From assembly GCA_002269645.1 (NCBI GenBank), contig NIVC01000012.1:1178001-1242000 (forward strand): 64,000 nucleotides of DNA. The letters are read 5' to 3'. A program made the position numbers and the translations under genes. Of this stretch, positions 41,971 through 64,000 are shown in pieces; the first letter of the stretch is position 1, and every line of letters begins with the position of its first letter. Under the pieces are notes generated by a model, which was given only the letters and a program-made list of their open reading frames with translations, did not search any database and was not told where the DNA came from. The DNA is from Macrostomum lignano (Eukaryota).

Positions 41971-42003
<33 letters not shown>

Positions 42004-42612
42004 GCTATCCGTGCAGGCAGTCAGTCTATTTGTGAATTTTCTGGTGGATCTGAAGAAAACCCGTCCGGCACAGGATTAAAGAGAAAGAGACGATCTGTTT
42101 TGGGTGAGTATTATCTGCTGTAGAAGTATTGTACACCAGAGTACTTGTGTTACTTGGTAGAGCACAATTCAAAAGCAATGCAACAATCTCAGTGGCATTG
42201 TTGGGACACAAGCTACAAACGCAATGAATAGTAAACACAGCCCAGCCTAGCTCAAGGCTAGTAATTTGTTGGGCATTTATTGGGACATTGCAGCCAGGCC
42301 TATTTTTTGAACAGCATTTGTTGGGTCGCACTTATTGGGACAATACTGATTCTAATCGCGACTACTTCTGAGTTCTGACTTTTCAAAACAGACCCAGCAT
42401 TAGTTGAACACGTTCTATTAAAGGGTTCCTTTATAGCCTATTAATGATTACTAAGGCAAGCCTATCTTAATTGATTTCTTTTCCTCGCAGATTCTGAAGT
42501 CAGCCACGCCAGCAACATGCCTAAGAGACAAGAATGCGCTTTAACGATCAGCAGCGAGCATTCTGATCTCACCGCTGCATCCGTCATTTGGTTCACTTGC
42601 TGCTCACAAGCC

Positions 42613-42645
<33 letters not shown>

Positions 42646-43365: not shown

Positions 43366-43398
<33 letters not shown>

Positions 43399-43400
43399 GC

Positions 43401-43493
43401 GGGGACAAGAAGGCGCCCTCCTAGAGAACATCATGGGGTCCCCGGAAGTCCAAGGAGAGACCGAACGGCCAAACCTTGGAACTAACTGCCTTC
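43401..43493 (+). ncRNA. HDV-like self-cleaving ribozyme fold at the exact 5' end of the LINE
   Basis: P1 43401-06/43438-43, P2 43409-15/43487-93, P3 ccc/ggg, P1.1 cc/gg, P4 tccaagg/ccttgga, J4/2 aCtaa (catalytic C 43482). L3 is atypically long (16 nt) and P1 is 6 bp. Confidence 0.7.
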
Positions 43494-46400
43494 CCAAACA
43501 GCGATGCCCCGCAGGGGGCGAGAGACTAAAACACGGCAGTGGAGATATCGATCACGACGTCAGAAATACCGATAACATCGACACAGTCCTTCGACTCCGC
43601 GGAGGGTGCGGTATAGCCCCCCGCAGCAAGCGGAGTGGTAGCGGGAAGAACGGCGAGGACCACAGCCCAGAGCTCATCCTGCAATTCAATTGCAACGGCC
43701 TTCGGGCCCGTTCCACCGAGCTGGCCAAGTGGCTCCAGACTAATCGACCTGCAGCTATTCTGCTTCAAGAGACAAAACTCCGGACGGGACAAGTTTTTAA
43801 CCCGCCGGACGGATACTGCGTGGCCGCTAGGTGCGACGGCCTCCCCAAGGACGCAGCCCAGCGGGGACAGGAGCCAGATGAGAGACCATCCGAAAGCAGC
43901 GCTCCCTCGGACACATGTCCGACGCCTTGGACAAGGTGTGGAGGACGTCGCCTTACTAGACCACGATGCCGGATGCGCTGGCCGGAGGACCGCACCGAAT
44001 GGTGCCCTGGATGCAAATCGGGCCGCACCGGTTGCGTTCGCAGGAACGAGCCATGGCCAACACCGAGTCTGAATCAGGCGGATATCACAGTGATAGCAAC
44101 AGAAGACGCAGGAACACACGCACCTGCACCTACGGCAGCGGCTGATGCAGCCGGGGCGACAACGATTACAACACAAGGGGCTAGCTTGGCACCTCCTAAG
44201 AAAACAGGCTGGCAGTGCTGCAAGTGCGGCAACCAAATTAAAGGACGGCAGTATTCGGTCCGATGCAACGGCTGCAACGACTGGTGTCACCTATCGTGTA
44301 GCGGCCTGGGCCGTAGCAACAGGTGGACAAGTGCTTTCAAAGCGGAAATGTGCAACTCCTGTACACCTGTCCAACCGCCGCCATCACAGCCACCGGCAGA
44401 ACGGAGCCCATCACCGTCATCACCGACACCACCATCACCGATACCGATACCAACAAATAAGACTCGGAAAAACCCGATCAATCACGCGGCCCGCGGCGGG
44501 GCGATGATTCTCACCCGCTCGGACATTGCCGTTGACAACATACCGACGCCAGGAGATAAGGAACGCGGCATGCTGGACGTCGCCGCAGCCGCCATCCACC
44601 TCAAAGACTCAAAGCCCATCACGCTCGTTTCTGTCTACGCACCACCTATCAGCGACCAGAGAGGCGAGACCTGGCACCCCCCCCTCAATCTCATTCCGGA
44701 CGCCCAGCGCGTCATCATAGGGGGCGACTTTAACGCTCACGGGATTTGGGACAGCCACCAAGAGGAAGATGACAGAGGCCGCAGGGTGGAAGCTTGGGCC
44801 AGCGCAAGGAACCTGCGACTCGCTAACGGCGAGCGACACACCCGCACCAACCCGGCGACAGGCGCTTTATCCTCGCCGGATATCACCTGGACTAGCACCA
44901 ATCTGCTGAGCAGCGTCGCGGACAGCTGGACAACTCAGAGTGACATGGGCTCGGATCATCTTCCCATCACGTTCCAGCTTTGCTCCGCTCACAAGCGCCC
45001 GACCAGGCAGAGGCGCCCTAGGACTGCAAAGTGGAGCTACCGAAAGGCGGACTGGAGTGGTTTTAAACAGGAGCTCGCCACCATCGATGCCGAAAGGGAA
45101 CAATACCCGACGGAAGGTGTCGAGGCCGAGCACCTCCACGCCCTTATCTGCGACGACATCCTGAAGGCGGCGAGCCATAACATCCCTAAAGGGGCTCTCC
45201 CGAGGACCAAACCCTTCTGGAGCGAGGAGTGCGAGAAGGCCACCCAGGCCTGCAAAGAGGCGCGCCGGACAGCTGAAACTGAACCGTCCGAACCCAACAT
45301 TGCAGCCTTCAAAATGGCCAGAAACCGAGTTCGGTCCACCATTCGCAAGGAAAAGGAAAAAGCCTGGAACGAGAAGGCGGCTCAGCTAGACGTTAACAGT
45401 GACCTCTTCCGCCTGCTGAAGAACATGAGGGGGGACGGGCACACCCCCGCCAGCAGTACATCTATTACCAGGCACCAAACGGGTGGTACCGCGCCCAGCA
45501 GACCAGCGCGAACTAAACTGGAAAAAGCGAACCTGTTCTGCCAGATGTACAGCGCGGTCTCCAGAGTACCAAAACGCCCAGAAGACAGACTGATCAACAA
45601 AAAGGCCTATGAAGCGGCCAGTGCCCGCTGTTGCGATGCCGACAATCGCCAGGGAATCTGCCAGCCCTTCAACCCCACGGAGTACCGGAACGCCGTCCGA
45701 GCCCTGAAATCTGGAAAGGCACCCGGACAGGACGGAGTCAGTAATGATATGCTGAAACACTTACCACCGTCCACTGACAAAAGACTCCTGGAGCTCATTA
45801 ACAGGTCATGGATGGGAGGCAAGTGCCCATGGCAGTGGAGAAAGGCTACCATTATCCCGATTCCCAAGAAAGGGAAGGACGCCAGCAAGCCGGAATCATA
45901 TCGCCCAATCGCCCTAACCAGCTGCGTGGCTAAGCTCGCAGAGCGCATGGTCCTCCAGCGCCTCCGTTACGCCCTGGAGGCCTCGGGTCGGCTGACCGCC
46001 AGCCAGGCGGGCTTCCGACGGGGGCGTTCCACTGAGGAGCTCATTGCCGACATCTCCCAGGAGATTTTCGACAAGCTCGAGGCCACCCCGCACATCAGGT
46101 CAGTGCTCTGCCTGCTTGATTTTAGCCGCGCTTACGACAGAGTCTGGAGGGCGGCTCTCTACTCGAAGCTGCGAGACTTGGGAGTGCCAGCCGACGTCAT
46201 CCGGTGGATCAAGGCCTTCCTGTCAGACCGAAGAGCCCGCGTGCGCGTCGGCGACTGCACCAGCAAAGAACGCATCTTCCGGGAAGGACTACCACAGGGG
46301 TCGGTGCTCGCCCCCACACTGTGGTTAGTCTACGTCAACGATCTGGCTGATGCGGTGCTAAACGCCGCCGCGGGTGTTTCCATCAAACTTTATGCCGATG

Positions 46401-48211
46401 ACAGCGCCCTCCTGACCTCTAACAGGTCTCTGGACACATGTGAAGAGAAGCTGCAACCCGCGCTGAACGCCGTCTCACAGTGGTGCAAGGAATGGAAAGT
46501 GGAGCTCAGCGTGGAAAAGAGCGTGTACGGCACTTTCACGCTGGACGCAAAGGAATCAAACGGCAAAAAGAGACTCAACCTGCTCATCGATGACAAGCCA
46601 ATAGCCTTTGACCCAGCCCCGAACTACCTCGGTGTTCGCCTAGACGGTCAACTCAATTTCGCGCAGCACGCCGCGACAGTCCGCGCCAAGATGTGCGCCA
46701 GACGCCGACCGCTCGCAGCGATGGCCGGCAGGAGCACCGGAGCTGATCTACAAACGATCCGAACAGCCTACATCAGTACCGTCCGCGCTGTGGCCGAGTA
46801 CGCCGCAGGTACCTGGCTATGCGGCGCCGCCCCCTCCACCAGACGAGCTATTGAACAGCAGCAGAACGCGTGCGCGAGACTGATTACGGGATGTATCATG
46901 CCGACCAACATCCGCTCAGTCCTACAACTGGCCGGGCTCACACCGCTCTCATTCATCGCGTCCGAGAGGGCGGCACGCCTAAGGGAAAGAGTCCTCAGAC
47001 TCGACCCGAGTGTCTCGGCGGGACAAGTAGCCTTGCGGAACACCAGGCCTAGACTGAAAAACCGTACCTACGAAGCTTTGGCACGCGATCACGGCCGCAC
47101 CCACGGAGACGGCGGCGCCGACGACGAAGCACAGCCGAACTCGCTGAACCTCATCGACCCGCGGGACGCCACCCGCCCCTTCCGGAACTGCTGGAGGAGG
47201 GCGGCACTGGAGCTGCCGTCGGTTGCCATATTGGATTCCCACAAAAGAGGCGACCCGGTAAGCCCCGGCATCCCGCCGTGGGAGTGCGACACACGGGACA
47301 TTAACATCCGCCTGGACATCTCGGCCCGATGCCGCCGCACGGACCCCCAGGAGTCCCGGAGCGCGGCGGCAACGGAGTTTCTGCAGTCACTGCCTGAGGC
47401 TGACATCAGCGTGTGGACAGACGGATCGGTGGCGGACGGCACCGGACCCGGCGGCAGCGCCGCTATAACCTGCACGAACTTGGCGAGCCATGTGCGCAAG
47501 GCCCCGGCCGGAATCATCTGTAGCTCATTTGACGCAGAAATGATAGCCATCCGCGAAGCACTGGTTTTTATTAAGAACAACCGCAGCCCGAGCGAAAAGA
47601 AGATTCGCCTATGTAGCGACTCCTTATCGTCACTGACAGCACTAGGGGCCGGACCACTAGCCCAGGCGACTAAGACCGGTACGGACTGCTGGCGCCACAT
47701 GCTAGACATCAACGAAACGGCCGACATAGAACTAATCTGGGTGCCAGCCCACTGCGGCATCAGCCTTAATGAAGCGGCGGACCGCGCGGCCGGCATGGCA
47801 AGAGGCTTGCCCCAAGAGGAAGTGCCCATCTCCTTCAACGCCGCAAAAGCAGCCATTCGCCGCGATCGCCGGACCCTGGAGAAAGAAACCCTGCCGCAAC
47901 CCTGGCCGGACTTCAAAGCGAGAGACCGGCGGGAGCAAACGGCGGTGTGCCAGCTTCGCGCAGGCATGACGATGCTCTGCGCCGAGACCCAGCACCGATT
48001 CGGTATGATCGATAATCCGCAGTGCCCGGACTGCGGAGAACTCGACGACAGCGCCCATGCGCTACTTCACTGCCACCGGGGAGACGCTCGACGGATGGCC
48101 CTGGTCGGGAACGATCACGAGGAGCTCCTCCGGAACCCGGGAAAATGTCTCTCGCTCCTTCGGAGCATGGGGCGATGGCCCCCGCAAATCTCGGCGCCGC
48201 CGCGCCGGTAA
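43433..48211 (+). CDS. LINE ORF (1592 aa): APE endonuclease with a PHD-finger insertion, reverse transcriptase, RNase H, C-terminal zinc knuckle
   Basis: ILQFNCNG..LLQETK, GGDFNAH, SDHLPI (APE); KAPGQDG, SYRPIALTS, QAGFR, LDFSRAYD, GLPQGSVLAP, YADD (RT); VWTDGS, FDAEMIAI, SDSLS, WVPAHCGISLNEAADRAA (RNase H); CPDC...HALLHC. No stops or frameshifts. Confidence 0.96.
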   Translation: MGSPEVQGETERPNLGTNCLPKQRCPAGGERLKHGSGDIDHDVRNTDNIDTVLRLRGGCGIAPRSKRSGSGKNGEDHSPELILQFNCNGLRARSTELAKWLQTNRPAAILLQETKLRTGQVFNPPDGYCVAARCDGLPKDAAQRGQEPDERPSESSAPSDTCPTPWTRCGGRRLTRPRCRMRWPEDRTEWCPGCKSGRTGCVRRNEPWPTPSLNQADITVIATEDAGTHAPAPTAAADAAGATTITTQGASLAPPKKTGWQCCKCGNQIKGRQYSVRCNGCNDWCHLSCSGLGRSNRWTSAFKAEMCNSCTPVQPPPSQPPAERSPSPSSPTPPSPIPIPTNKTRKNPINHAARGGAMILTRSDIAVDNIPTPGDKERGMLDVAAAAIHLKDSKPITLVSVYAPPISDQRGETWHPPLNLIPDAQRVIIGGDFNAHGIWDSHQEEDDRGRRVEAWASARNLRLANGERHTRTNPATGALSSPDITWTSTNLLSSVADSWTTQSDMGSDHLPITFQLCSAHKRPTRQRRPRTAKWSYRKADWSGFKQELATIDAEREQYPTEGVEAEHLHALICDDILKAASHNIPKGALPRTKPFWSEECEKATQACKEARRTAETEPSEPNIAAFKMARNRVRSTIRKEKEKAWNEKAAQLDVNSDLFRLLKNMRGDGHTPASSTSITRHQTGGTAPSRPARTKLEKANLFCQMYSAVSRVPKRPEDRLINKKAYEAASARCCDADNRQGICQPFNPTEYRNAVRALKSGKAPGQDGVSNDMLKHLPPSTDKRLLELINRSWMGGKCPWQWRKATIIPIPKKGKDASKPESYRPIALTSCVAKLAERMVLQRLRYALEASGRLTASQAGFRRGRSTEELIADISQEIFDKLEATPHIRSVLCLLDFSRAYDRVWRAALYSKLRDLGVPADVIRWIKAFLSDRRARVRVGDCTSKERIFREGLPQGSVLAPTLWLVYVNDLADAVLNAAAGVSIKLYADDSALLTSNRSLDTCEEKLQPALNAVSQWCKEWKVELSVEKSVYGTFTLDAKESNGKKRLNLLIDDKPIAFDPAPNYLGVRLDGQLNFAQHAATVRAKMCARRRPLAAMAGRSTGADLQTIRTAYISTVRAVAEYAAGTWLCGAAPSTRRAIEQQQNACARLITGCIMPTNIRSVLQLAGLTPLSFIASERAARLRERVLRLDPSVSAGQVALRNTRPRLKNRTYEALARDHGRTHGDGGADDEAQPNSLNLIDPRDATRPFRNCWRRAALELPSVAILDSHKRGDPVSPGIPPWECDTRDINIRLDISARCRRTDPQESRSAAATEFLQSLPEADISVWTDGSVADGTGPGGSAAITCTNLASHVRKAPAGIICSSFDAEMIAIREALVFIKNNRSPSEKKIRLCSDSLSSLTALGAGPLAQATKTGTDCWRHMLDINETADIELIWVPAHCGISLNEAADRAAGMARGLPQEEVPISFNAAKAAIRRDRRTLEKETLPQPWPDFKARDRREQTAVCQLRAGMTMLCAETQHRFGMIDNPQCPDCGELDDSAHALLHCHRGDARRMALVGNDHEELLRNPGKCLSLLRSMGRWPPQISAPPRR

Positions 48212-48854
48212 AGCGAGCGCTGAAGACGAAGAAGAAGCAGCAGCCGCTATCCATGCAGGCAGTCAGTCTATTTGTGAATTTTCTGGTGGATCTGAAGAAA
48301 ACCCGTCCGGCACAGGAATAAAGAGAAAGAGACGATCTGTTTTGGGTGAGTATTATCTGCTGTAGAAGTATTGTACACCAGAGTACTTGTGTTACTTGGT
48401 AGAGCACAATTCAAAAGCAATGCAACAATCTCAGTGGCATTGTTGGGACACAAGCTACAAACGCAATGAATAGTAAACACAGCCCAGCCTAGCTCAAGGC
48501 TAGTAATTTGTTGGGCATTTATTGGGACATTGCAGCCAGGCCTATTTTTTGAACAGCATTTGTTGGGTCGCACTTATTGGGACAATACTGATTCTAATCG
48601 CGACTACTTCTGAGTTCTGACTTTTCAAAACAGACCCAGCATTAGTTGAACACGTTCTATTAAAGGGTTCCTTTATAGCCTATTAATGATTACTAAGGCA
48701 AGCCTATCTTAATTGATTTCTTTTCCTCGCAGATTCTGAAGTCAGCCACGCCAGCGACATGCCTAAGAGACAAGAATGCGCTTTAACGATCAGCAGCGAG
48801 CATTCTGATCTCACCGCTGCATCCGTCATTTGGTTCACTTGCTGCTCACAAGCC

Positions 48855-48887
<33 letters not shown>

Positions 48888-49496
48888 GCTATCCGTGCAG
48901 GCAGTCAGTCTATTTGTGAATTTTCTGGTGGATCTGAAGAAAACCCGTCCGGCACAGGATTAAAGAGAAAGAGACGATCTGTTTTGGGTGAGTATTATCT
49001 GCTGTAGAAGTATTGTACACCAGAGTACTTGTGTTACTTGGTAGAGCACAATTCAAAAGCAATGCAACAATCTCAGTGGCATTGTTGGGACACAAGCTAC
49101 AAACGCAATGAATAGTAAACACAGCCCAGCCTAGCTCAAGGCTAGTAATTTGTTGGGCATTTATTGGGACATTGCAGCCAGGCCTATTTTTTGAACAGCA
49201 TTTGTTGGGTCGCACTTATTGGGACAATACTGATTCTAATCGCGACTACTTCTGAGTTCTGACTTTTCAAAACAGACCCAGCATTAGTTGAACACGTTCT
49301 ATTAAAGGGTTCCTTTATAGCCTATTAATGATTACTAAGGCAAGCCTATCTTAATTGATTTCTTTTCCTCGCAGATTCTGAAGTCAGCCACGCCAGCAAC
49401 ATGCCTAAGAGACAAGAATGCGCTTTAACGATCAGCAGCGAGCATTCTGATCTCACCGCTGCATCCGTCATTTGGTTCACTTGCTGCTCACAAGCC

Positions 49497-49529
<33 letters not shown>

Positions 49530-50138
49530 GCTATCCGTGCAGGCAGTCAGTCTATTTGTGAATTTTCTGGTGGATCTGAAGAAAACCCGTCCGGCACAGG
49601 ATTAAAGAGAAAGAGACGATCTGTTTTGGGTGAGTATTATCTGCTGTAGAAGTATTGTACACCAGAGTACTTGTGTTACTTGGTAGAGCACAATTCAAAA
49701 GCAATGCAACAATCTCAGTGGCATTGTTGGGACACAAGCTACAAACGCAATGAATAGTAAACACAGCCCAGCCTAGCTCAAGGCTAGTAATTTGTTGGGC
49801 ATTTATTGGGACATTGCAGCCAGGCCTATTTTTTGAACAGCATTTGTTGGGTCGCACTTATTGGGACAATACTGATTCTAATCGCGACTACTTCTGAGTT
49901 CTGACTTTTCAAAACAGACCCAGCATTAGTTGAACACGTTCTATTAAAGGGTTCCTTTATAGCCTATTAATGATTACTAAGGCAAGCCTATCTTAATTGA
50001 TTTCTTTTCCTCGCAGATTCTGAAGTCAGCCACGCCAGCGACATGCCTAAGAGACAAGAATGCGCTTTAACGATCAGCAGCGAGCATTCTGATCTCACCG
50101 CTGCATCCGTCATTTGGTTCACTTGCTGCTCACAAGCC

Positions 50139-50171
<33 letters not shown>

Positions 50172-51138
50172 GCTATCCGTGCAGGCAGTCAGTCTATTTG
50201 TGAATTTTCTGGTGGATCTGAAGAAAACCCGTCCGGCACAGGATTAAAGAGAAAGAGACGATCTGTTTTGGGTGAGTATTATCTGCTGTAGAAGTATTGT
50301 ACACCAGAGTACTTGTGTTACTTGGTAGAGCACAATTCAAAAGCAATGCAACAATCTCAGTGGCATTGTTGGGACACAAGCTACAAACGCAATGAATAGT
50401 AAACACAGCCCAGCCTAGCTCAAGGCTAGTAATTTGTTGGGCATTTATTGGGACATTGCAGCCAGGCCTATTTTTTGAACAGCATTTGTTGGGTCGCACT
50501 TATTGGGACAATACTGATTCTAATCGCGACTACTTCTGAGTTCTGACTTTTCAAAACAGACCCAGCATTAGTTGAACACGTTCTATTAAAGGGTTCCTTT
50601 ATAGCCTATTAATGATTACTAAGGCAAGCCTATCTTAATTGATTTCTTTTCCTCGCAGATTCTGAAGTCAGCCACGCCAGCAACATGCCTAAGAGACAAG
50701 AATGCGCTTTAACGATCAGCAGCGAGCATTCTGATCTCACCGCTGCATCCGTCATTTGGTTCACTTGCTGCTCACAAGCCGCAGCAGCAGCAGCAGCAGC
50801 AGCAGCAGCCGCTATCCGTGCAGGCAGTCAGTCTATTTGTGAATTTTCTGGTGGATCTGAAGAAAACCCGTCCGGCACAGGATTAAAGAGAAAGAGACGA
50901 TCTGTTTTGGGTGAGTATTATCTGCTGTAGAAGTATTGTACACCAGAGTACTTGTGTTACTTGGTAGAGCACAATTCAAAAGCAATGCAACAATCTCAGT
51001 GGCATTGTTGGGACACAAGCTACAAACGCAATGAATAGTAAACACAGCCCAGCCTAGCTCAAGGCTAGTAATTTGTTGGGCATTTATTGGGACATTGCAG
51101 CCAGGCCTATTTTTTGAACAGCATTTGTTGGGTCGCAC

Positions 51139-53183
51139 CACAGATACTATAAACACTAGATAGGCCACTCCAGCTAATTTTCACAACACGACAGTTTACT
51201 CTACTTTCTGCTTAGTAGTAGTAAAAACATTTTAGCGTTATTTATATTTTTTTAAAATAAAAAAACAGATGAATGCAATGCAGCAATTGTATTGATTTTT
51301 TGCAAAAAGAAACTTATAATTATACTTTCCACAATTCAAAGCAACATTGTGAATGCTTTAGATTGCATAGAAGGCTATATTATTGCAGTCTACTATTGTA
51401 TATTTAGCAAATACGAGCTATATCATATACTCCATAATCCATATTCGTGAAGCAAAATAGAAAGATTTCTCATCTTAATCAGCTCATCTGTTTGTGAAAC
51501 TCGCAGCGTGCTGTCGAAGAACAGGGTCGCCAGTCGCCCTTGTTCAGAGGCAGCATTCAGAACGGCCCAACAGATGAAAAAAACTGGCGAATGCGCCACT
51601 TCAAGGTCCAGGGATGTATCCGATGGAGCCAATCCTCAGTGGTTTCGTAACAGGCAGCCGATAAGCAGCAGGACTTTTGTGGTGCAGCTGCAATGAGCTG
51701 CTGATGAGATGACATCCTTTGACCAGAGCACCCCTGACTGCGAGCGCCCTGCCGCCCAGTCGACCGCTGGAAGCTGCGCTAGCCACGCCTCCACAGTCCA
51801 TGGATGCACGACTGCGCTGCACTTGCCTTGACCATCGAGAGTTGCCGCTGCAGCCGCTTGATTTGCCTGTCGCTTTCGGGATTGCCGCTGCAGCCGCTTG
51901 ATTTGCCTGTCGCTTTCGGGATTGCCGCTGCAGCCGCTTGATTTGCCTGTCGCTTTCGGGATTGCCGCTGCAGCCGCTTGATTTGCCTGTCGCTTTCGGG
52001 ATTGCCGCTGCAGCCGCTTGATTTGCCTGTCGCTTTCGGGATTGCCGCTGCAGCCGCTTGATTCGCCTGTCACTTTCGGGATCGTTGCTGCAGCCGCTTG
52101 ATCTTTGCCTCTAGCGCTTGGAACCCGCGAATCGGCTGCAGAGGTGAGAGCTTTCAGCCGCAACAGCTGTTCTCGGCGCAGAATCTGGTAGCCGAAGGTT
52201 GCTCTGCCACAGCACTGGCAGCAGGCAAGTCGCAGGCTCGGCTGCAGATAGATTGCTAATTGGCCCCAGCACTGGAGGGTACATGTCGTCTGCCTCTTCA
52301 TCGTTTATCAGTCCTTTGCACAGAGGGTAGCTGGTCTATTTGAACGAGCCGAGGCAGCATCAACTCTTGGTGTGGGATTGCGTCCCAGCGAAAACAGATG
52401 TCTTGCACATCCGTGGCACTTTGTAAGGCAGCAGTAGGCCTCGTCCATAAAGTGCAAGCTGAACACACGGAGGCCCCGTGATTTAATTGTTTATAAAGAT
52501 CAATATCCACGCTCCTGTAGTAGCTGCTGCCAGCGCTTCGCCAGTGTCATCTTTTGGTAATTTATGCATTCGCAACGGATTTTTCTTTCTCGGATGTTAA
52601 TAGCACTAGTACAAAGCTCGTGCAAGTGGGAGCACAGCAGTGGTTCGAATCAAAACATTTCTCGAGTACAAGATTAGATAGAAAAGCTAGTATGCACTCG
52701 AACTTTCTTTAACTCTGACTCTTGTCCTGTTCATCTATATAAGCTTGTATTTAAGCACGATTCGCCACCCCCAAATTTTCTAACCCACAACCTCTCAACC
52801 CCCACCCCACCCCTAACCCAGGCTAGCTATGTGCAGTCCTTTATTTTCTATCCCACCACCAGTAGGCCTAAATTATCGATCCACTCACCCTGCCTTATAC
52901 GAAACTGATATTAACCCTATTCCAGACTACCCCCCTTCCTCCACTTTGAAAGATAGCGGCATTGCACACTGTCTGTCGCGTCTTAATGTACACCATTACT
53001 GCACAAAACAAGTTAGTTGTTTATGGCGTTAGCAAAACGATGTCTTAAAAACAGTCACTCGATTTGTCTAATTTAGCAAATAATACTGTTGCTTCCTTTC
53101 ATTGCTACTAAGCAGAAAGTAGAATAAAAAACTTGCCCAGAAAATTAGCCTGAGTGGCCTATCTAGTGTTTATAGTATCTGTG
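51139..53183 (-). mobile_element. Internally deleted P-superfamily DNA transposon (2045 bp) with a degenerate THAP domain
   Basis: 8-bp TSD ggtcgcac (51131-38, 53184-91). TIR begins CACAG (CANRG type), perfect for 32 bp and imperfect to ~100 bp. Minus-strand frameshifted THAP remnants (CCAPTC, HKLPKD, RW, VCS-LHF, DAIP) and P-transposase-like pieces (GVLWSKD, SPAAYRL, LFFD). Confidence 0.85.
51844..52103. repeat. 40-bp tandem repeat (~6.5 copies) inside the P-like element
   Basis: gccgctgcagccgcttgatttgcctgtcgctttcgggatt at 51844, 51884, 51924, 51964, 52004, 52044. Confidence 0.95.
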
Positions 53184-54114
53184 GGTCGCACTTATTGGGA
53201 CAATACTGATTCTAATCGCGACTACTTCTGAGTTCTGACTTTTCAAAACAGACCCAGCATTAGTTGAACACGTTCTATTAAAGGGTTCCTTTATAGCCTA
53301 TTAATGATTACTAAGGCAAGCCTATCTTAATTGATTTCTTTTCCTCGCAGATTCTGAAGTCAGCCACGCCAGCGACATGCCTAAGAGACAAGAATGCGCT
53401 TTAACGATCAGCAGCGAGCATTCTGATCTCACCGCTGCATCCGTCATTTGGTTCACTTGCTGCTCACAAGCCGCAGCCGCAGCAGCAGCAGCAGCAGCAG
53501 CAGCCGCTATCCGTGCAGGCAGTCAGTCTATTTGTGAATTTTCTGGTGGATCTGAAGAAAACCCGTCCGGCACAGGATTAAAGAGAAAGAGACGATCTGT
53601 TTTGGGTGAGTATTATCTGCTGTAGAAGTATTGTACACCAGAGTACTTGTGTTACTTGGTAGAGCACAATTCAAAAGCAATGCAACAATCTCAGTGGCAT
53701 TGTTGGGACACAAGCTACAAACGCAATGAATAGTAAACACAGCCCAGCCTAGCTCAAGGCTAGTAATTTGTTGGGCATTTATTGGGACATTGCAGCCAGG
53801 CCTATTTTTTGAACAGCATTTGTTGGGTCGCACTTATTGGGACAATACTGATTCTAATCGCGACTACTTCTGAGTTCTGACTTTTCAAAACAGACCCAGC
53901 ATTAGTTGAACACGTTCTATTAAAGGGTTCCTTTATAGCCTATTAATGATTACTAAGGCAAGCCTATCTTAATTGATTTCTTTTCCTCGCAGATTCTGAA
54001 GTCAGCCACGCCAGCGACATGCCTAAGAGACAAGAATGCGCTTTAACGATCAGCAGCGAGCATTCTGATCTCACCGCTGCATCCGTCATTTGGTTCACTT
54101 GCTGCTCACAAGCC

Positions 54115-54147
<33 letters not shown>

Positions 54148-54756
54148 GCTATCCGTGCAGGCAGTCAGTCTATTTGTGAATTTTCTGGTGGATCTGAAGA
54201 AAACCCGTCCGGCACAGGATTAAAGAGAAAGAGACGATCTGTTTTGGGTGAGTATTATCTGCTGTAGAAGTATTGTACACCAGAGTACTTGTGTTACTTG
54301 GTAGAGCACAATTCAAAAGCAATGCAACAATCTCAGTGGCATTGTTGGGACACAAGCTACAAACGCAATGAATAGTAAACACAGCCCAGCCTAGCTCAAG
54401 GCTAGTAATTTGTTGGGCATTTATTGGGACATTGCAGCCAGGCCTATTTTTTGAACAGCATTTGTTGGGTCGCACTTATTGGGACAATACTGATTCTAAT
54501 CGCGACTACTTCTGAGTTCTGACTTTTCAAAACAGACCCAGCATTAGTTGAACACGTTCTATTAAAGGGTTCCTTTATAGCCTATTAATGATTACTAAGG
54601 CAAGCCTATCTTAATTGATTTCTTTTCCTCGCAGATTCTGAAGTCAGCCACGCCAGCGACATGCCTAAGAGACAAGAATGCGCTTTAACGATCAGCAGCG
54701 AGCATTCTGATCTCACCGCTGCATCCGTCATTTGGTTCACTTGCTGCTCACAAGCC

Positions 54757-54792
<36 letters not shown>

Positions 54793-55643
54793 GCTATCCG
54801 TGCAGGCAGTCAGTCTATTTGTGAATTTTCTGGTGGATCTGAAGAAAACCCGTCCGGCACAGGATTAAAGAGAAAGAGACGATCTGTTTTGGGTGAGTAT
54901 TATCTGCTGTAGAAGTATTGTACACCAGAGTACTTGTGTTACTTGGTAGAGCACAATTCAAAAGCAATGCAACAATCTCAGTGGCATTGTTGGGACACAA
55001 GCTACAAACGCAATGAATAGTAAACACAGCCCAGCCTAGCTCAAGGCTAGTAATTTGTTGGGCATTTATTGGGACATTGCAGCCAGGCCTATTTTTTGAA
55101 CAGCATTTGTTGGGTCGCACTTATTGGGACAATACTGATTCTAATCGCGACTACTTCTGAGTTCTGACTTTTCAAAACAGACCCAGCATTAGTTGAACAC
55201 GTTCTATTAAAGGGTTCCTTTATAGCCTATTAATGATTACTAAGGCAAGCCTATCTTAATTGATTTCTTTTCCTCGCAGATTCTGAAGTCAGCCACGCCA
55301 GCGACATGCCTAAGAGACAAGAATGCGCTTTAACGATCAGCAGCGAGCATTCTGATCTCGCCGCTGCATCCGTCATTTGGTTCACTTGCTGCTCACAAGC
55401 CGCAGCAGCAGCAGCAGCAGCAGCCGCTATCTGTGCAGCAGTCAGTTAATTCATGAGTTTTCTGGCGGAGCTGGATATTTTTTAATTTTCTGAATTGAGA
55501 AGCCGATTAACTGTTGTGTGCTTCACTGGAATATTATTTAGAGGACGCATTTTTTGCAGTCTGTTTCTAATAAAACCGGTGCAATGACCGCGGTAGAGCT
55601 CTAGCATTTGCTTTTTATAGTATTTGTGTATATTCTTTTTCAA

Positions 55644-55978
55644 GCTATGCTGGAATTGTTGGGACAGCCCTATCCACACTGGCTATGGTGGAATTGTTGG
55701 GACAGCCCCATCCACACTGGCTATGGTGGAATTGTTGGGACAGCCCTATCCACACTGGCTATGGTGGAATTGTTGGGACAGCCCCATCCACACTGGCTAT
55801 GGTGGAATTGTTGGGACAGCCCCATCCGCACTGGCTATGGTGGAATTGTTGGGACAGCCCCATCCACACTGGCTATGCTGGAATTGTTGGGACAGCCCTA
55901 TCCACACTGGCTATGGTGGAATTGTTGGGACAGCCCTATCCACACTGGCTATGCTGGAATTGTTGGGACAGCCCTATA
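55644..55978. repeat. 38-bp minisatellite (gctatggtggaattgttgggacagccccatccacactg), ~9 copies
   Basis: Tandem units; source of the WWNCWDSP pseudo-ORFs. Confidence 0.96.
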
Positions 55979-56599
55979 CTATAGTGTGTGCTGGCTTCTG
56001 CTATAGTGTGGTTCATTTCCGCATCCTTTTACGTAGCATTCTGTGGGTCCGAATAGCTGACATGTACGAGCTACCTTTTGAGTAATTCTAGTGATTGTGT
56101 CATAATCAATAAAGTACATTTTTATGAACAGTGGAGTTTCGCTACAGAATTGTTTTTTTCCCAGTGGCACTAAATGTAGCAAATTTTGTTTATTCAGATC
56201 GTAAAATTTTTTTGATATGTGTCAATGTCGTTTGTTTTCGATAACCTTAAAGTCCCTTGCCATTTACCATCCTGTCTTCTATAATCTATGATCGCTGAAA
56301 TTATCCTGTGAAATTTGACGCGCTGATATTATTGCCTTAAGTGGAATTCAGCAAGACACCAGGGTTTTTTAATTCTGTTTTAGACAAGTATACATGTACA
56401 ATCTGTTGTGAGTTCAATGCACCTCGAAAAATGCTTTCCAACTGTTTTCAGTAAGCCAAAAGCATGTTGTCAATAAAAATCGATTTGGTGGGTTGAAAAT
56501 TGCCTGTGTGGGGACGTGTGTGTGTGTGATTTTTCGTGTGTCGGAGCAGTCCCAATATGTGCAAGCTTTTGCACACTTGGCCAATAAGTGCCTCGTGCA

Positions 56600-56644
<45 letters not shown>

Positions 56645-58652
56645 TATGTCCGAGGTTTGTTTTTGTTTTAATTTTTTGTCAAAAACGTTTTTCAGAATGC
56701 TACCAAAGACTTCTGAAAGCTTAGTTCCAGAAAAAACTCCTGTTTTGCTGTCTTCTGAGTGTACTTTTTCAAGTCGAGTTTCTTCAACCGAGTTTTGTCT
56801 CTGTTTAAAACCATTTCTAAGTATGAAAAAGCTAAAATAGGTTTAGTAAACACGACTCTATTTTGCTTTTTGTCCCACTTCAATACACTTTGTCGAGAGT
56901 TATATTTGTCAGCTTGTAGATTTATATCGGACAAAATACCGAAAATGACATATTGCCAATTACTTTTAGAGCTAAAAATGAAAGATTTCTATCTCGCTAG
57001 TGACTTTGCAGCGACGAGAGGGCAGATCAGTTTTGCAGTAAACGCGTCTGAACGCCAGGGCCCCGGTTCGATTCACGAAATGTGCACGAAAATTGACCGG
57101 TGGCCTGTCGGGCGGATTCATACCCCAGCTGAGGCCTGAGCCCCGAAACACAGAGAATGCCCGATGATTAGAAAGTCAGGGTCCCTGTGTGAGCGTGCAG
57201 TGCATAAGTTTTAGAGCTTGCGTATAGTATTGGTGCTCTTGTATGTGTTCAGGAGTCAGCGAAATGGGGAGAACAGACGATTTCGCAGAAGTCTAGGTGT
57301 CTTCAGCCCTCCTGTGAATACTTTATTTATAGTAGCAAAAAGCGACATGATGCAATTTTGCACGTTTTTCGAGCGCGATCATTTGTTTTTTGGAATGAAT
57401 TTTTTGATAGATACGCTATTTTACTCACCATTCGCTTATTAACGGCAGTTTCCGCAAATATCAACATATTTTTAGTCTTACTATTTATTTTTCACAATCA
57501 CATCATTGTGTTGTTTAACTTCATACTTTGGTAAAAACACAGGTATGCGTGAGAAGTGAAGTTTGTCGGTATATAATCAACTTTGCTTACATGGATACCG
57601 TAGTAAAAAGAATTTACGAGTAACACGAAGCAGTAAATTTCAGGACAACCATTCAAATTTAACGTCTCCAGCTGACAAGCATATAGAATCATTCGGCTGA
57701 TTCCGGCGCCCAGTGCTCGGTCTTCGGTCCCAGCCCTAGCCCCAAGGCGCACCCTTGAGAAGCTGCCGTATTTTGTTTTCATACTATCACAGTCTTGTTT
57801 GCTATCAGATCTCATATATAGCTAGGTTTTTGAATTCGAGGCTTAAATTTTTAAATAAACAAAATGTTATACAAGTGCCTATAAAGGCTCATTGTCCCGT
57901 ACAGCAATCCGACTTCACCGAAGCAGTTCTAATGAAGCAGTTGGTAGTATACTAATATTATTGTAAATTTCGTTCCAAAGACCTCCGAAAAAGGATATAA
58001 AAATTTCAAATAGAGCATAGTAAAGTTACAAAGTCAAATGTTAATTGTGTTCTTTTCAATTTAAATTCAGTACACAAAGTAACTAGTAAAAGTATTTAAC
58101 GTACTTGCAGCTTTTATATTTCTGCATATTCGTCATTTTTTGCGCATATCAGTAAAACAATAATTGGCTAAATATTATTACTTGGCACATGGGATAAATA
58201 ATCTTATTGAAATTTTCTTATCAGTGAGTTTTTAAATTAGTGGAACGCTTGAATCGTACGGCAAAAATTATGCTAAAAATACTAAAGCAAACAATAGACA
58301 ATCGTTTTCAAAAAGTGTTTAGATCACAGCAAACAATTAGGTTAAAGAAAGTAATATCCTCATATTGAATAAAAAGTATTTTATTTGTAGTTTGAAATTT
58401 GCCTTCGAAAAGCCTGAAGCTTTTGTTTCAGTAATTTTGTTTCCTCTTTAAAAAGCAGCAAAAGCTTGACTTTTGCGTTAATGTTTATGAAAAATTCAAA
58501 CTTCAGACTTTTCAAAAATATTTTGTCTATGGTTGGTAAAAGTACAACTATATGTAATATTTGGGTTGTTGCGCATCACACATAAAAGAGTTGCTAGTTG
58601 TAACAATCCCGTAGTTCAATTAATCTCAATATTTTGTTTTCCAATTGGATAG

Positions 58653-61600
58653 TTAACCGGCATAGCTGAAGCCAAGAAGAGCGCGCCTATTCTTCTTCTT
58701 CTTGTGCTTGATTACCTTTTTGTGTTTGATCACCTTCTTTGGCTTAACGACCTTGACGACCTTCTTTGGTTTTTTTACCTTGAGTCGAAGCATCCAGTGC
58801 TTCCAGCGTTTCAAGTAGCTCAAACAGTCGTTGCAGCTGACCTGACCCATAAGCTTCACGCTATGTAAGCACTTTGATCGTCTGGCAGTGAATGTGATCT
58901 GGTACAGGTTCCTGTGACTGCGAACGCATTTGCATCCAAGGACCAGCTTCTTCTGTACGCCGTGACGGCAATCTGAAAATAATGAATTTTTAGCTTAAAA
59001 TTAGTCAAATATTTATAAACAAGTAGCACAAAAACATGTTTCACTGGCATCTAGATAGTCATAGCTAACCTGGAAGGCAGTCGAAATACGCAACAGCTGT
59101 TGACCTGGTGATGCACGTGAACCGCCCGGTTGCTGACTTGACCCGCCTGCTCGATACAAACAACAGTCGACGCACTCCATGGAAGCAAGTGGAGACAACG
59201 TAATAGCTACGACTGCATCGAGGCGGCTCCGGGCACCGGATGCGACGGAGCACGACGCTCTTAGCACGGCAAACTCCACGGACGCGAATGTAAACGGTCT
59301 TGATGACTTTGCGGAAACCTTTGCGACAAGTCTTCTGGATGACAGTTCGACCGCGTTTGCAGGCTGAAACAAAATTTCATAAAAATAATATATTTTGGTA
59401 GAAAAATCGCAAAATCGAAACAAGTTAAAATAGAATTTCTAGCTAAACTTACGACAAGGGATTTTCTTCACAATACGCTTGCGGTAAACTCGGCATTCGC
59501 CTTTCTTGAACTTTGACAATATCTCAATTATTTTCCTATAGGCCGAACGCTTCGAGCACGGCAAAACTCTTCTGCGAGGACGGCAAACGACTGGAGCGAC
59601 GCAAGGCACGCGGGAAACAACTACATGCCTAACGCAGCGGAGAACGCAGATTGACTTGCGGCATGATTTCTTCACAGAATATGTGGTCGTGCGCTTTTCA
59701 CGGAATTCTCTAGAACCAACGCATGAGATCTTGACGACCTTTGGCTTCTTGCAGTCAACAGGACACGGAACGTGTTTAACAATCTTGTGCTTTCTACATT
59801 TCGGGTATCTGCCAGAAAACCATATTGTTGTAATAGACCGGTAGCGCCTTTTTCCGCCGCACTTACTAACATGTTTAATCTTCTTTTTCATACAGCGACG
59901 CGGGACACCACATGGAACCGCAGCACGTGTTACACGTCGGATGCACTTTTGCCGGCATACAGGGCGACGACCCTTGCTGCAAGATATCTTAGCCACGTAG
60001 AAAACAGTCGTCGTTACCCGATTTATCACACCTTTCCTGCACCCCCTCACAATCTTCTTCGACTTTGGACAAGGAACCGGGGCTGAAAAAAAGGCCAAAT
60101 TATGTATGGCTTTTAACAAACAAGTAAACAACTAACAAAAAGTAAACGTTTATAAAATGTACTTACGACAAGGAAGCTTCTTGGTTATCTTGGACTTATA
60201 GGACACACAGCGACCACGAACTGCCCGGTAATAAACCCTAACAACGTATTGATACGCAGAGTGCTTCCTACACTTGCGAAGGACTTTCTTGTTAAAGCAT
60301 TTAACAGGAGGACACTTTTTCTTGGTGACAGTCTGCTTCCTAATGCACTTGCCGCCGCGATCGATAAACACCACCTTGGTAAGCTTCCTGTAGCCCTTGC
60401 GGCACTTCTTGTCCAGGAGCAGCAGAGGCTTCCTGTTGCACTTGCACTTAATGATGGACACCTGGACTTTCTTCTTGTGACACACCCAGCCGGTTTTGTA
60501 CTTGCGCGACTCGTAGAAGTTCAGGAAGGTCTGCGTGCGTCCAGCCTTGCACTTGCTGCCGACCGTCGTCTTGTGGTAGTGAATCTGGTGGGACGAGCAG
60601 CCAGAGCAGCGGACGCGACGCACGGATTTTCGTCGCCAGACACAGCGTCCGTGGACCCGAGTGCGGTACTTCGTTGTGATGGTTCGGAAGTTGTGCACAC
60701 ACTTGGTGGTGTGGTAGGATAGCTGGTATCGGCACTTGCGCTTCTTGCACGGCTTCCTGGCTGACCGCTTGTGCTTCTTCACGCACACAATCTTGCAGCG
60801 GCGCGCTTTTCCAGACTTCAAAGCACCTGAGAAACAGTTGTGCATTCGTTTAAAGTAAGGTATGCTTGTAAACCATTGCGAACTAAAATAATTGGTTGCA
60901 AAACGTTTTAGGCATTGGGACTTACGGTGACACACTCGCTTCTTCACGTAGTAATAGGTGATGATGTACGAGTGTGAGTTCTTCTTCGAGCATCGGACGT
61001 GCACCTTGCGCGGCTTCCTGCAGCGATGTGGCGGCTTCGGACACAACACGCGAGAGTGGATCAGCTTGCGGATGCAGTGCAGTGTGCAGATACGGCCGCT
61101 GCACCTCTTCTTAACGGTGGAAGTCGCGATCGTGAGAGTCCGGTACTTCCTGCCCTTGCCGCACGAAGTTCGCTTGATGGTCTTGGACCTCTTCGGGCAA
61201 ACCACTGGGCACGGATAGTGCTTGACGGTCCTGTGCTTCCTGCACTTCTTTCCGACTCGTGTATTCCAGGTAGTGATGACGGATCGGTAGCGCCTCTTAC
61301 CGCCGCACTTGGTAAGCTTGACCTTCTTGGCCTCGTCGCACACGATGTGAAAGCACGGGACACCAGACTTGGTCACTCGCTTTGTGCACACCTGTCGGCA
61401 TACGATCGGCTTCTTCTTGCTGCACACAATCTTACCAGAGTAGAAAATCGTAGTGGTGACCTTGTGCCTGACTCCCTTTGTGCACTTCGTTTTGGTTACT
61501 CTCGTCTTCGGGCACTTGCGAGGTGCTAAAATATTAATTCAATAAGCAGATATAAACCCTGGTTTTGAAACTTCTATTTTGACGAGTAGATTAGCTACCC

Positions 61601-64000
61601 TTGCTACTTGTCAAGGAACGAGCTACTTACGGCAAAGAAGTCGGGCAATTGTCTCTCGCTTGTAGATGACACAAGTTCCGCGAACATTCCTGTAGAGCGC
61701 CTTGATCTGGTACTTGTATGCAGAGTGTTTGCGACACTTGGTCCAGAAGGGCGGAGGCTGCTTGCAGCGACGATCTGGCGGACGCGTTTTGCACCGCTTT
61801 CGCGATCGCAGAACTCGTCTGACGCACTTCACTGTGCACTTGCCCTTGTGAACGCACGCGCGACGAACGGTGTAGCTGATGATGGACTTCACAGAGAACT
61901 TGCGACCCTTTTTGCAAGGCCTTATGATGGTCTGAGTCTTTGGGCACTTGACCGGACACGGATAGCGCTTGGTGGTCTTGCGCCTCTTGCAGACGCCTTT
62001 TACTTGGATGTACTTGATTGTGACGACAACGCGATAGCGACGACTGCCGCCGCACTTGGTCACGTGGTCTTTGTCGCCCTTGCACTTGATTTTCTTGCAC
62101 GGAACGGCCGAGCGCTTCACCTTCTTGATGCAGTGCTGCGTGCAACGAGGCGGCAGAGACATCGTGCACTTCACACGCGACGTGTAGAAGATGTGCGTCG
62201 TGACGCTCTTCGCCCTGCCAGGCTTGCACTCTTTGCGGATGATCTTGGCTTTCGGACAAGTTCTCGGAGCTGCAATCAAGGCGAAAGCGAATAATCACTT
62301 AGCATAGTTACGAATAATCTACATAGTTTACGGATTCGGCTTCTCTTAACATGCGCCAATGGCGTTGCAAGTCACGCCTGGGGCACAAAGGTGCAAAAGG
62401 TATTAATATACTCGTTTTTCACGAGTGCATTTACTTACGGCACCGGATCTTCTTGATGACCTTCCGGCTCTTGGGAACGCATTTCTTTCCGTTCCACCGG
62501 TAGGTGACTCGAGTAAACACGCGATAGGCCCTGTGCTTCTTGCAGTGACGGATGAGAGTCCTGCTCGAGCAGTCCTTCCTGCAAATCTTCTTTGCAGAAA
62601 TCTTGCGCTTCTTCACGCAGATTATCTTGCACACCCGTTTTCCTCCTGACTTTGATTTTGATTTTCCCATGTCTGAAGTTGTAAATTGTAAATTACAAGT
62701 TATTAAGCATCAGACCAGCATCTAGCATGTGTCCGTTCTCCTACCTGTGCACACTTCCCGAACGACGCTGCTGACGATGGAATCAAGCTTGTTAAAGTTT
62801 CCGGCTCGCCAGAATCTTCCTTTGCTTGAGATGCCCTTTAGTTCAGCCCTGCAGCAGTAGATTTCGAAAGCAAGCATGCTTCGCTTATAATGTCTTATTT
62901 GAATCAGGTAACCTATGTTCTGTAATACAGTTTAAGAAATGTATTCTTACGGATTAATCTTGTCGGTCACGCTTGGGTCGGGGTTGTAGATTCCGACAGA
63001 GACAAAGCGGGCGCCCTTCTTCTTCAAGACTTTAGCCGAGGCGACGGGGTCACCCATCGTGCTCTTCCGTCAGTGATGACCACGACAATGAACGGGACTC
63101 CAGCTCGTCTCTTCGGGTAGATGTCACTGTTGACAAGGTCGATAGCCGCATAAGTCATTGTGATTCCCTCGTCTCGTGGAAGCTTCGACATGGCGGCCAG
63201 AACCTGCGACTTGGTTTTGTACTTGTCCAAGTTGAACACGAGTTTCGGTCTGGTCGAATAAGTGACAACAGCAACGCGAACGCCAGTCGGAGATACGCCC
63301 ATCCTGCGAACGATGTGCTGAACAAAGCGAGATTCTTTGGCAAAATCGGCGTCGTGAATGCTGGTCGAAGAGTCCAGAACGAACACGAGGTCGGCAACCT
63401 TGCTGCAGGTGCGACTTGGCGGAACAACCAGACCGGTGCAAACCTTCTTCTTCTTGTAGTAATACGTAGTGGTGTAGGAGTACTTGTGCCCAGCCGAGCA
63501 TCGCGTGTGCACCTTTCGTGGCTTCCTGCAGCGATGTGGCGGCTTCGGACACAACACGCGAGAGTGGATCAGCTTGCGGATGCAGTGCAGTGTGCAGATA
63601 CGGCCGCTGCACCTCTTCTTAACGGTGGAAGTCGCGATCGTGAGAGTCCGGTACTTCCTGCCCTTGCCGCACGAAGTTCGCTTGATGGTCTTCGACCCCT
63701 TCGGGCAAACCACTGGGCATGGATAGTGCTTGACGGTCCTGTGCTTCCTGCATTTCTTTCCGACTCGTGTATTCCAGGTAGTGATGACGGATCGGTAGCG
63801 CCTCTTACCTCCGCACTTGGTAAGCTTGACCTTCTTGGCCTCGTCGCACACGATGTGAAAGCACGGGACACCAGACTTGGTCACTCGCTTTGTGCACACC
63901 TGTCGGCATACGATCGGCTTCTTCTTGCTGCACACAATCTTACCAGAGTAGAAAATCGTAGTGGTGACCTTGTGCTTGGCTCCCTTCGTGCAGTTGCTGG
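58653..64000 (-). CDS. 3' portion (~1500 codons) of a large Lys/Arg/Cys-rich modular protein containing a von Willebrand factor A domain
   Basis: Exons: >64000-62951 (with an apparent 1-bp frameshift near 63063), 62848-62745, 62672-62439, 62269-61631, 61525-60926, 60826-60167, 60082-59453, 59363-59070, 58972-58653 (TAA); splice phases are consistent. vWA motifs DLVFVLDSSTSI, GVRVAVVTYS, GITMT, VVVITDG. The rest is ~200-aa Cys-patterned K/R-rich repeats and a KKVIKH tail. Confidence 0.88.

Follow-up and report, generated by a model that had tools for sequence, protein, structure and literature searches.

We analysed a window of 64,000 nucleotides (nt) from the flatworm Macrostomum lignano (assembly GCA_002269645.1, contig NIVC01000012.1, positions 1,178,001 to 1,242,000 of the forward strand), in which the minus strand of positions 64000-58653 is filled with open frames rich in lysine, arginine and cysteine. 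A sequence-only reading, made from the letters of the window alone, had taken these frames for a very large cationic protein with a von Willebrand A (vWA) domain and a possible role in adhesion or in the extracellular matrix. The translations contain no single open reading frame (ORF) spanning the region: the coding sequence is spliced, with canonical GT-AG sites at every frame change and ten exons counted, for which nine coordinate ranges are given (E1-E4, E5a, E5b and E6-E8; Table 1). The introns are mostly 72-172 nt long and mostly of phase 1, the usual arrangement for shuffled extracellular modules. The plus strand of the same interval holds no meaningful long ORF, and an Rfam scan of the window returned no matches. 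The spliced model comprises 1,509 codons with one 1-nt frameshift and represents the 3' quarter of a gene that continues beyond the window. Its tail ends in ...KVKKPKKVVKVVKPKKVIKHKKVIKHKKKKNRRALLGFSYAG followed by the stop codon, so that the KKVIKH ending noticed in the first reading is the true C-terminus. The E1 module has an internal duplicate in E5a (DNA 63995-63495 versus 61487-60987, 97% identical), while the unique exons E6-E8 form 414 codons free of stops, with intact GT-AG sites.

Table 1. Coding segments of the gene inside the window and the tryptic peptides recorded for them by mass spectrometry
Feature	Position	Strand	Content	Peptides
Exon E1, 5' part	63435..64000	-	one cationic Cys module of four ~50-aa units; ends ...YYYKKKKVCT; cut by the window edge	VTTTIFYSGK, SGVPcFHIVcDEAK, SVITTWNTR, TLTIATSTVK
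Exon E1, 3' part	62951..63434	-	von Willebrand A domain, DLVFVLDSSTS...ITDG...VSVGIYNPDPSVTDKINP; MIDAS residues DxSxS, T, D	VADLVFVLDSSTSIHDADFAK, FVSVGIYNPDPSVTDK
1-nt deletion (frameshift) in the vWA exon	63066..63067	-	window GACGG-AAGAGC, intact copy GACGGCAAGAGC	
Exon E2	62745..62848	-	C-terminal end of the vWA domain (AELKGISSKGRFWRAGNFNKLDSIVSSVVREVCT); splice sites read	LDSIVSSVVR, AGNFNKLDSIVSSVVR
Exon E3	62439..62672	-	short cationic Cys module, 78 aa (DMGKSKSKSGGKRVCKIICVKK...KKIRC)	
Exon E4	61631..62269	-	213-aa module of four units: 6-Cys, 4-Cys, 6-Cys, 4-Cys	SVTTHIFYTSR, TQTIIRPcK
Exon E5a	60926..61525	-	200-aa module, near-copy of the E1 module, without vWA domain	
Intron E5a/E5b	60925-60827	-	GTAAGT...CAG	
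Exon E5b	60167..60826	-	220 aa, more divergent cationic Cys units; no Pfam match	TQTFLNFYESR
Exon E6	59453..60082	-	210-aa module, unique, outside the super-repeat	SITTIWFSGR, VPcVAPVVcRPR (downstream of the frameshift)
Exon E7	59070..59363	-	98 aa, divergent Cys units; no Pfam match	SYYVVSTcFHGVR (downstream of the frameshift)
Exon E8	58653..58972	-	last Cys unit, Lys-rich tail (KVKKPKKVVKVVKPKKVIKHKKVIKHKKKKNRR), TAA stop at 58655-58653	

The composition of the encoded protein is extreme. Over the whole 1,509-residue model, lysine makes up 16.6% and arginine 12.3% (28.8% together), cysteine 7.9%, aspartate 1.7% and glutamate 0.9% (2.6% together). Outside the vWA domain, lysine and arginine rise to 30.8% and acidic residues fall to 1.8% (23 of 1,313 residues), giving a net charge of +381; the claim of more than 1500 codons with very few acidic residues outside the vWA domain was thus accurate. 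The cationic regions contain 8.9% cysteine in a fixed pattern and only 4.8% glycine, and the model has one N-glycosylation sequon. The modules of about 200 residues with regularly spaced cysteines that had been described are also present, with the motifs KCGG.RRYR and [YV]PCPV.C each occurring in four copies at module spacing. An alignment of the modules (A1) resolves each of them further into four units of 47-57 residues, in which a six-cysteine form (C-x9-11-C-x19-C-x5-7-C-x3-C-x10-C) alternates with a four-cysteine form (C-x9-10-C-x20-C-x10-12-C). The profile of either form tiles all of the sequence outside the vWA domain and also picks up the other one, weakly and in register. The number of cysteines is even in each unit, and neighbouring units abut directly, sharing Pro-Cys boundaries and without acidic spacers.

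Models built with AlphaFold2 from few-sequence alignments suggest a fold for the unit. One complete module (E4) is predicted as all beta, with a short strand and a long hairpin repeated four times, at a mean predicted local distance difference test score (pLDDT) of 82.6 and a predicted template modelling score (pTM) of 0.32, a low value of the latter being expected for a beads-on-a-string arrangement. A single six-cysteine unit reaches a pLDDT of 87.8, with strands at residues 8-12, 20-35 and 39-54. The unit is therefore predicted to consist of one short strand and one long hairpin of 16+16 residues, held by two or three predicted disulfides. The predicted hairpins consist of beta-branched and aromatic residues studded with lysine and arginine, and it is the succession of such hairpins along the chain that would account for a whole-chain net charge of about +1,470.

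We found no relatives of this unit among described domains. Pfam searches at E-values up to 10 with all non-vWA pieces of the window, with P0005, the protein model of the locus at NCBI (National Center for Biotechnology Information), and with the N- and C-terminal regions of the gene gave no match to the unit, and VWA and VWA_2 were the only families found in any of these sequences. The unit profile matched none of the sequences in the Protein Data Bank (PDB) at E-values up to 10. Foldseek comparison of the predicted structures with the PDB gave a best E-value of 0.24 with the module as query and of 0.36 with the unit, and these matches were just the generic long hairpins of phage coat proteins and single-stranded DNA-binding (SSB) proteins. 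An exhaustive HMMER search of 1.84 billion representative proteins with a module profile returned four matches, all of them M. lignano copies or the protein P0006, which as a query matched itself alone; a word-indexed protein search returned only M. lignano copies (UniRef entries). Three candidates were set aside on the way. Weak Pfam matches to TBP (E 0.05-0.12) were attributed to chance, a C-terminal cystine knot (CTCK) in E7-E8, suggested by the CxC...CxxC ending, has no Pfam match and no CxGxC motif, and a fold resembling the thrombospondin type 1 repeat (TSR), with three strands and six cysteines, is not supported by any TSR structure among the Foldseek matches. Whether compared by profile, by sequence or by predicted fold, the unit thus has no match among the known extracellular cysteine-rich repeat families (EGF, TSR, TIL, Kunitz, CCP and others), as the first reading had anticipated when it could not assign the repeat to a family.

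The vWA domain, on the other hand, is readily recognised. The exon in the window matches Pfam PF00092 with 88.2 bits (cutoff 23.8; E 9.6e-25), and P0005 contains four vWA stretches in Pfam (331 bits). The DSSTS motif pointed out earlier belongs to a complete metal ion-dependent adhesion site (MIDAS), whose residues are read in the translation as DSSTS, GITMTY and VVITDG. The closest PDB sequence matches are collagen VI alpha3 (9han_C), the mussel protein PTMP1 (4cn8, 1.6e-23) and the I domains of the collagen-binding integrins alpha1 and alpha2. 

The frameshift of the window model lies in this exon: a Gly codon comes next to the MIDAS Asp, and the missing base is directly behind it, so that the window reads ITDGRARW...stop. 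Of the other two MIDAS vWA copies in the locus, which we compared with that of the window, one lies 17 kb upstream, is intact and reads ITDGKSTMG, and one 5.5 kb upstream (position 29504 of the locus record of NIVC01000012.1, hereafter L001) has the same 1-nt deletion as the window. P0005 terminates at the frameshift stop (...ITDGRARWVTPSPRLKS), whereas the predicted products P0001 and P0004 read ITDGKSTMG. At least one more frame change relative to the intact P0004 is found in the locus, at about position 25764 of L001. The peptide AGVPFIVVVITDGK, observed by mass spectrometry (MS), requires the intact frame. The deletion is either an assembly indel or a sign that this copy is decaying; other copies are intact and expressed. 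In the same gene upstream of the window, frame changes relative to P0004 and the loss of a vWA segment from one super-repeat were noted across L001 positions 25763-25766, 29504-29519 and 23732-24647.

P0005 is encoded on NIVC01000012.1 of the same assembly, and positions 53024-64000 of the window are 100% identical to that record, which therefore extends the gene to its start. Mapping of P0005 and P0004 places the gene at positions 10001 to 39433 of L001, a span of about 29.4 kb with about 40 coding segments. The conceptual whole protein has 5,909 codons with no stop inside the segments and a net charge of +1,473. At least 75 units are detected in it at an independent E-value below 0.01 (38 of the six-cysteine and 37 of the four-cysteine form). 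Three vWA domains with DxSxS lie in super-repeats, each some 5.5 kb long and sharing 99.6-99.9% identity; together with two N-terminal vWA domains without DxSxS they bring the number of vWA domains to five, covering about 950 of the about 5,900 residues. The order of elements in the protein is a signal peptide, an acidic stretch, the two non-MIDAS vWA domains, the chain of units with the three MIDAS vWA domains, and the Lys-rich tail.

The signal peptide (MPSTATKCSRAVLLLALCIAVAVAA/TDD) is predicted at the 5' end of the gene, 24 kb past the edge of the window, consistent with the earlier statement that the N-terminus lies outside it. It comprises a basic n-region, a hydrophobic core of 15 residues and a cleavage motif of small residues. 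In P0005, residues 8-26 have a mean Kyte-Doolittle value of 2.2, with K/R before and AVA/A after them, and form the sole strongly hydrophobic segment. The acidic stretch that follows contains 18 D/E and two K/R in 60 residues. No transmembrane segment was found elsewhere in the protein (the maximum Kyte-Doolittle value of the window part is 1.47), and the lack of a hydrophobic C-terminal segment argues against a glycosylphosphatidylinositol signal or a transmembrane anchor. The signal peptide, the absence of transmembrane segments, the even cysteine numbers, the phase-1 exons and a vWA domain of the collagen VI, integrin I and PTMP1 type bear out the proposal of an extracellular polycation. 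Of the outcomes that the sequence-only reading had named as counting against it, neither a missing signal peptide (named together with a nuclear or cytosolic location) nor modules belonging to an intracellular family was observed: a signal peptide is predicted, and no family match was found. The product of the locus is a secreted polycation of giant size, predicted to be folded and equipped with MIDAS vWA domains.

Public databases describe the locus imperfectly. P0005 skips repeat copies and jumps between super-repeats, and for this reason we rejected merging it with the window model. One super-repeat on L001 is without the vWA segment, and residues 1180-1422 of P0004 are unmatched in L001; the repeat content of the locus therefore differs from that of the longest predicted product. 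P0002 (A0A1I8FSL3) and P0003 (A0A1I8F7R1) are frame-scrambled models of the same gene family, listed in UniRef as 'SWIM-type domain-containing protein' and 'Ig-like domain-containing protein', respectively. These names look like artefacts, because neither entry has a precomputed Pfam domain.

Outside the M. lignano records, the only relatives found were three short genomic contigs (L002-L004) from the Sequence Read Archive runs SRR31628392, SRR31628403 and SRR31628435, which carry exons in the order E3-E4-E5a at about 68% nucleotide identity to the window. Between the window exons and these contigs, amino acid identity is 60-78%, the ratio of nonsynonymous to synonymous substitution rates (dN/dS) is 0.17-0.29, and 46 of 46 cysteines are kept. 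For E3, comparison with the orthologous exon in the Logan contig L002 gives 78% identity, a dN/dS of 0.17 and seven of seven cysteines; for E4, the same contig gives a dN/dS of 0.29 and 20 of 20 cysteines. Judged by these substitution ratios, the modules are under purifying selection.

The protein is translated, including the exons in the window. At least 15 distinct tryptic peptides occur in the MS data of Wunderer et al. 2019 (PMC6410801), in Dataset S2 (adhesive footprints) and Dataset S3 (amputated tails). Some of the peptides, such as SGVPcFHIVcDEAK, VLcPKPPHR and VPcVAPVVcRPR, cross unit boundaries, which indicates that the units were still joined in the digested protein. The corresponding entries are RNA1509_167_1 (1,540 aa, pI 10.7, annotated just as vWA), RNA1509_2732_3 (1,207 aa) and RNA1310_6177_1, the first two being cross-referenced to the transcript RNA815_108 (PMC6410801). 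In one footprint run the protein has a score of 29.7, compared with 31.9 for the adhesive protein Mlig-AP1. The transcript identifiers are present in the supplements only and are absent from the main texts of the papers that we searched.

Expression of the gene is also strong over the full length of the animal. Positional RNA-Seq data published by Arbore et al. 2015 (PMC4490696) place RNA815_108 (7,576 nt) in class [0,0,0], with 5,494 reads in the head fragment, 5,074 in head and testis, 4,656 in head, testis and ovary, and 7,869 in the whole worm, corresponding to log2 steps of -0.26, -0.19 and +0.55. Transcript coverage is high. The transcript is strong in the head fragment, is diluted by the gonad regions, is somewhat enriched by the tail and is specific to no region. 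The expression and MS evidence both come through transcript identifiers in which repeats are collapsed and which may stand for several copies of the gene that are nearly identical. The positional data rule out specificity for the tail, antrum, prostate, eggshell or testis.

Taken together, these results make it probable that one very large M. lignano gene, of which the window contains the 3' quarter, encodes a structured polycation that is secreted into a matrix or mucus present all over the body. The expression all along the body is the reason why the protein looks like a matrix or mucus component and not like tail glue. Of the interpretation as glue, mucus or eggshell material offered in the first reading, the extracellular polycation was upheld, and its peptides do occur in footprint and tail MS; a dedicated product of the tail, antrum or eggshell was not upheld, given class [0,0,0]. 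The protein would be a structural component of a body-wide secretion or of the extracellular matrix, with surface mucus, rhabdite-type granules and the basal matrix as candidates. By analogy, the cationic hairpin array may condense with polyanions such as sulfated glycosaminoglycans and hold them together; planarian rhabdites are organised by sulfated glycosaminoglycans (PMC5450325), and heparin is an antagonist of the cationic cohesive proteins in flatworm glue (PMC6410801; PMC9229212). The MIDAS vWA domains may use Mg2+ or Ca2+ of the medium to bind acidic ligands, collagen-like or other, and so tie or cross-link the chain to them, and the acidic N-terminal stretch may help to mask the charge during export.

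Several observations weigh against this interpretation. In this assembly, two of the three MIDAS vWA copies have a broken frame and there is a further break upstream, so that the window copy could be non-functional and the peptides could come from a paralogous or homeologous copy. The footprint list also holds tubulin, BiP and LSM14; the samples are therefore not pure secretions, and presence in them is no proof of secretion onto the substrate. Copy number inflates the reads counted for a transcript in which repeats are collapsed, and the AlphaFold models were built on alignments of only four and six sequences.

The first of these points leads to the alternative of a pseudogene truncated by frameshifts, of which the window would contain a dead remnant that is not translated and whose ORFs survive only through recent duplication. 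The deletion at 63067/63066 is common to the copy 5.5 kb upstream, a further frame change lies at L001 ~25764, and the NCBI model stops at the frameshift, all as such a remnant would have it. Against this, E6-E8 are open over their whole length with intact splice sites, peptides of E6 and E7 are detected, dN/dS relative to the other sample is 0.17-0.29, and the predicted products P0001 and P0004 are intact. Single-base indels in near-identical repeats are a common error of long-read assemblies, and we take the contig to come from such an assembly (Mlig_3_7) of a highly repetitive genome, an origin that would make errors of this kind common here. We therefore consider a dead remnant unlikely.

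Another alternative places the protein in the duo-gland adhesive system of the tail, as Mlig-ap1 itself, as an unassembled part of it, or as a third adhesive or cohesive protein. A giant size, richness in lysine, arginine and cysteine, peptides in the footprint MS with a score similar to that of Mlig-AP1 in one run, and the gain in expression once the tail is included all fit this role. Head-only fragments, which are without adhesive organs, nevertheless contain the transcript at an about equal level. The K/R-rich regions of Mlig-ap1 are GRK repeats around a core of C-lectin, vWD, C8, TIL and EGF domains, whereas Pfam gives VWA only in the present protein; furthermore, neither the Mlig-ap1 antibody epitope (SRKPRRKNRKSRKP) nor any of eight MS peptides of Mlig-AP1 occurs in the window model, P0001, P0004 or P0005. 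Architecture, peptides and expression thus rule out identity with Mlig-ap1. Wunderer et al. kept the transcripts as separate entries and report two adhesive proteins only, with this protein undiscussed (PMC6410801), and double RNA interference of ap1 and ap2 abolishes the adhesive vesicles entirely. Tail glue in any of these forms is quite improbable, and the organ-specific glue reading is already largely refuted. Of the analogy with Mlig-ap1 drawn in the sequence-only reading, composition holds, while architecture (Cys-free GRK repeats and another core), tail specificity and peptides or epitopes do not.

The chain could also be a polyprotein precursor, cut at dibasic sites into free cationic, disulfide-locked hairpins that serve as host-defence peptides in the surface mucus. 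Tachyplesin, arenicin and protegrin are free cationic beta-hairpin host-defence peptides of 17-25 residues, and the predicted units share their design of an amphipathic, K/R-rich antiparallel hairpin closed by (here predicted) disulfides; the acidic N-terminal stretch and the body-wide expression would also suit a precursor. However, the present units are concatenated about 100 times and at 47-57 residues exceed the known hairpin peptides, they abut and share Pro-Cys boundaries instead of being separated by acidic spacers, vWA domains are embedded in the chain, and tryptic peptides span the unit boundaries. Processing into free peptides seems very doubtful on these grounds. An intracellular, protamine-like protein binding nucleic acid or chromatin, for which the extremely basic composition and the weak Foldseek neighbours of the unit among SSB hairpins (E >=0.7) might be cited, deserves hardly any credence in view of the signal peptide, the five vWA domains of extracellular-matrix type, the even and invariant cysteine set in every unit, the lack of enrichment in the testis region and the recovery of the protein from material left on surfaces.

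The secreted polycation of a body-wide matrix or mucus that we favour shares features with several known systems. Like Mlig-ap1 and the ap3 GRK proteins of Minona and Theama, it is a secreted flatworm protein of thousands of residues, extremely rich in lysine and arginine, found in footprint MS and with a proposed charge interaction with polyanions. The cationic parts of ap1 and ap3 are, however, Cys-free, low-complexity GRK(HS) repeats, as opposed to predicted folded, disulfide-locked units of about 50 residues; Mlig-ap1 also differs in its C-lectin/vWD/C8/TIL/EGF core, against vWA domains only (Pfam) in the present protein, and in its tail-specific expression, against expression along the whole body. 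Collagen VI alpha3 and the mussel byssal protein PTMP1, the best vWA matches, likewise have the MIDAS motif and several vWA domains per secreted chain. In contrast to them, the present protein has no collagen triple helix (no piece has a Pfam Collagen match that would indicate a Gly-X-Y region), its vWA domains are a minority of the chain, and the rest is a repeat that they do not have. Mussel mfp-2 with its EGF repeats, barnacle cp-20k and sea star Sfp1 are likewise secreted, modular and high in cysteine, with a proposed cohesive role (PMC6410801); their repeats belong to known families (EGF, vWD/C8), unlike the present unit, which is without a Pfam, PDB or Foldseek match. In its proposed way of working, the protein thus resembles both the cationic cohesive proteins found in flatworm glue and matrix proteins with several vWA domains, but it belongs to neither group.

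We rate it as a giant modular protein, secreted for a role in matrix or adhesion, whose building block is a domain that is undescribed and restricted to its lineage. More tentatively, the unit could define an undescribed extracellular domain family, so far macrostomid-only, and the protein (~5,900 residues, ~+1,470) could be a second giant, body-wide folded polycation whose part it would be to condense the sulfated polysaccharide of rhabdite or mucus granules and to add cohesion to surface deposits. Flatworm temporary adhesion is currently explained by two proteins, one of them acting via unstructured cationic repeats; the same animal also makes an equally large polycation with its charge on a predicted rigid, disulfide-locked beta-hairpin scaffold, and this product recurs in a published footprint proteome yet was never described. 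Hardly any proteins are known from flatworm mucus, rhabdites or matrix, and this one is a candidate component of them. The unit offers a new small-domain fold for structural study and a possible natural template for structured polycationic biomaterials. The locus also calls for caution in annotation, as its public models suffer from truncation, collapsed repeats or broken frames, and the automatic names of two of them are unsupported.

The remainder of the window contains mobile elements, other coding sequences and repeats. An ORF of 678 aa at 13-2049 (+), cut by the window start, matches RVT_1 (4.5e-9) and has a C-terminal region resembling a GIY-YIG nuclease, a layout that we take to be that of Penelope-like elements. 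On the minus strand, a 335-aa Cys-poor ORF at 8031-9038 has no Pfam match and may be an exon or a gene. Two exons at 34940-35638 and 36795-37343 (+) belong to a gene of the major-facilitator superfamily (sugar-transporter or SV2-like; MFS_1 8.2e-19 and 3.6e-9). Micro- and minisatellite arrays occupy 2293-2781, 4442-5157, 9159-9960, 10587-11331, 11900-12859, 13879-14731, 31311-31995, 51842-52102 and 55644-55977, with units of (TATC)122 and of 31, 32, 37/82, 21, 21, 12/82, 40 and 38 nt, and produce spurious long ORFs on both strands. Arrays of a 642-bp satellite lie at 39884-43400, 48230-51138 and 53182-55473, with copies 99-100% identical; Tandem Repeats Finder missed this satellite because of its period limit of 500. 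An apparently intact retrotransposon of the type without long terminal repeats (non-LTR) is inserted in the satellite at 43401-48229 (+). Its ORF (43433-48211, 1,592 aa) encodes an endonuclease, a reverse transcriptase and RNase H, and its GC content is 59-61% compared with about 46% around it. The left flank ends at position 326 of the satellite unit and the right flank resumes at position 309, an overlap suggesting that about 18 bp of the target site were duplicated.

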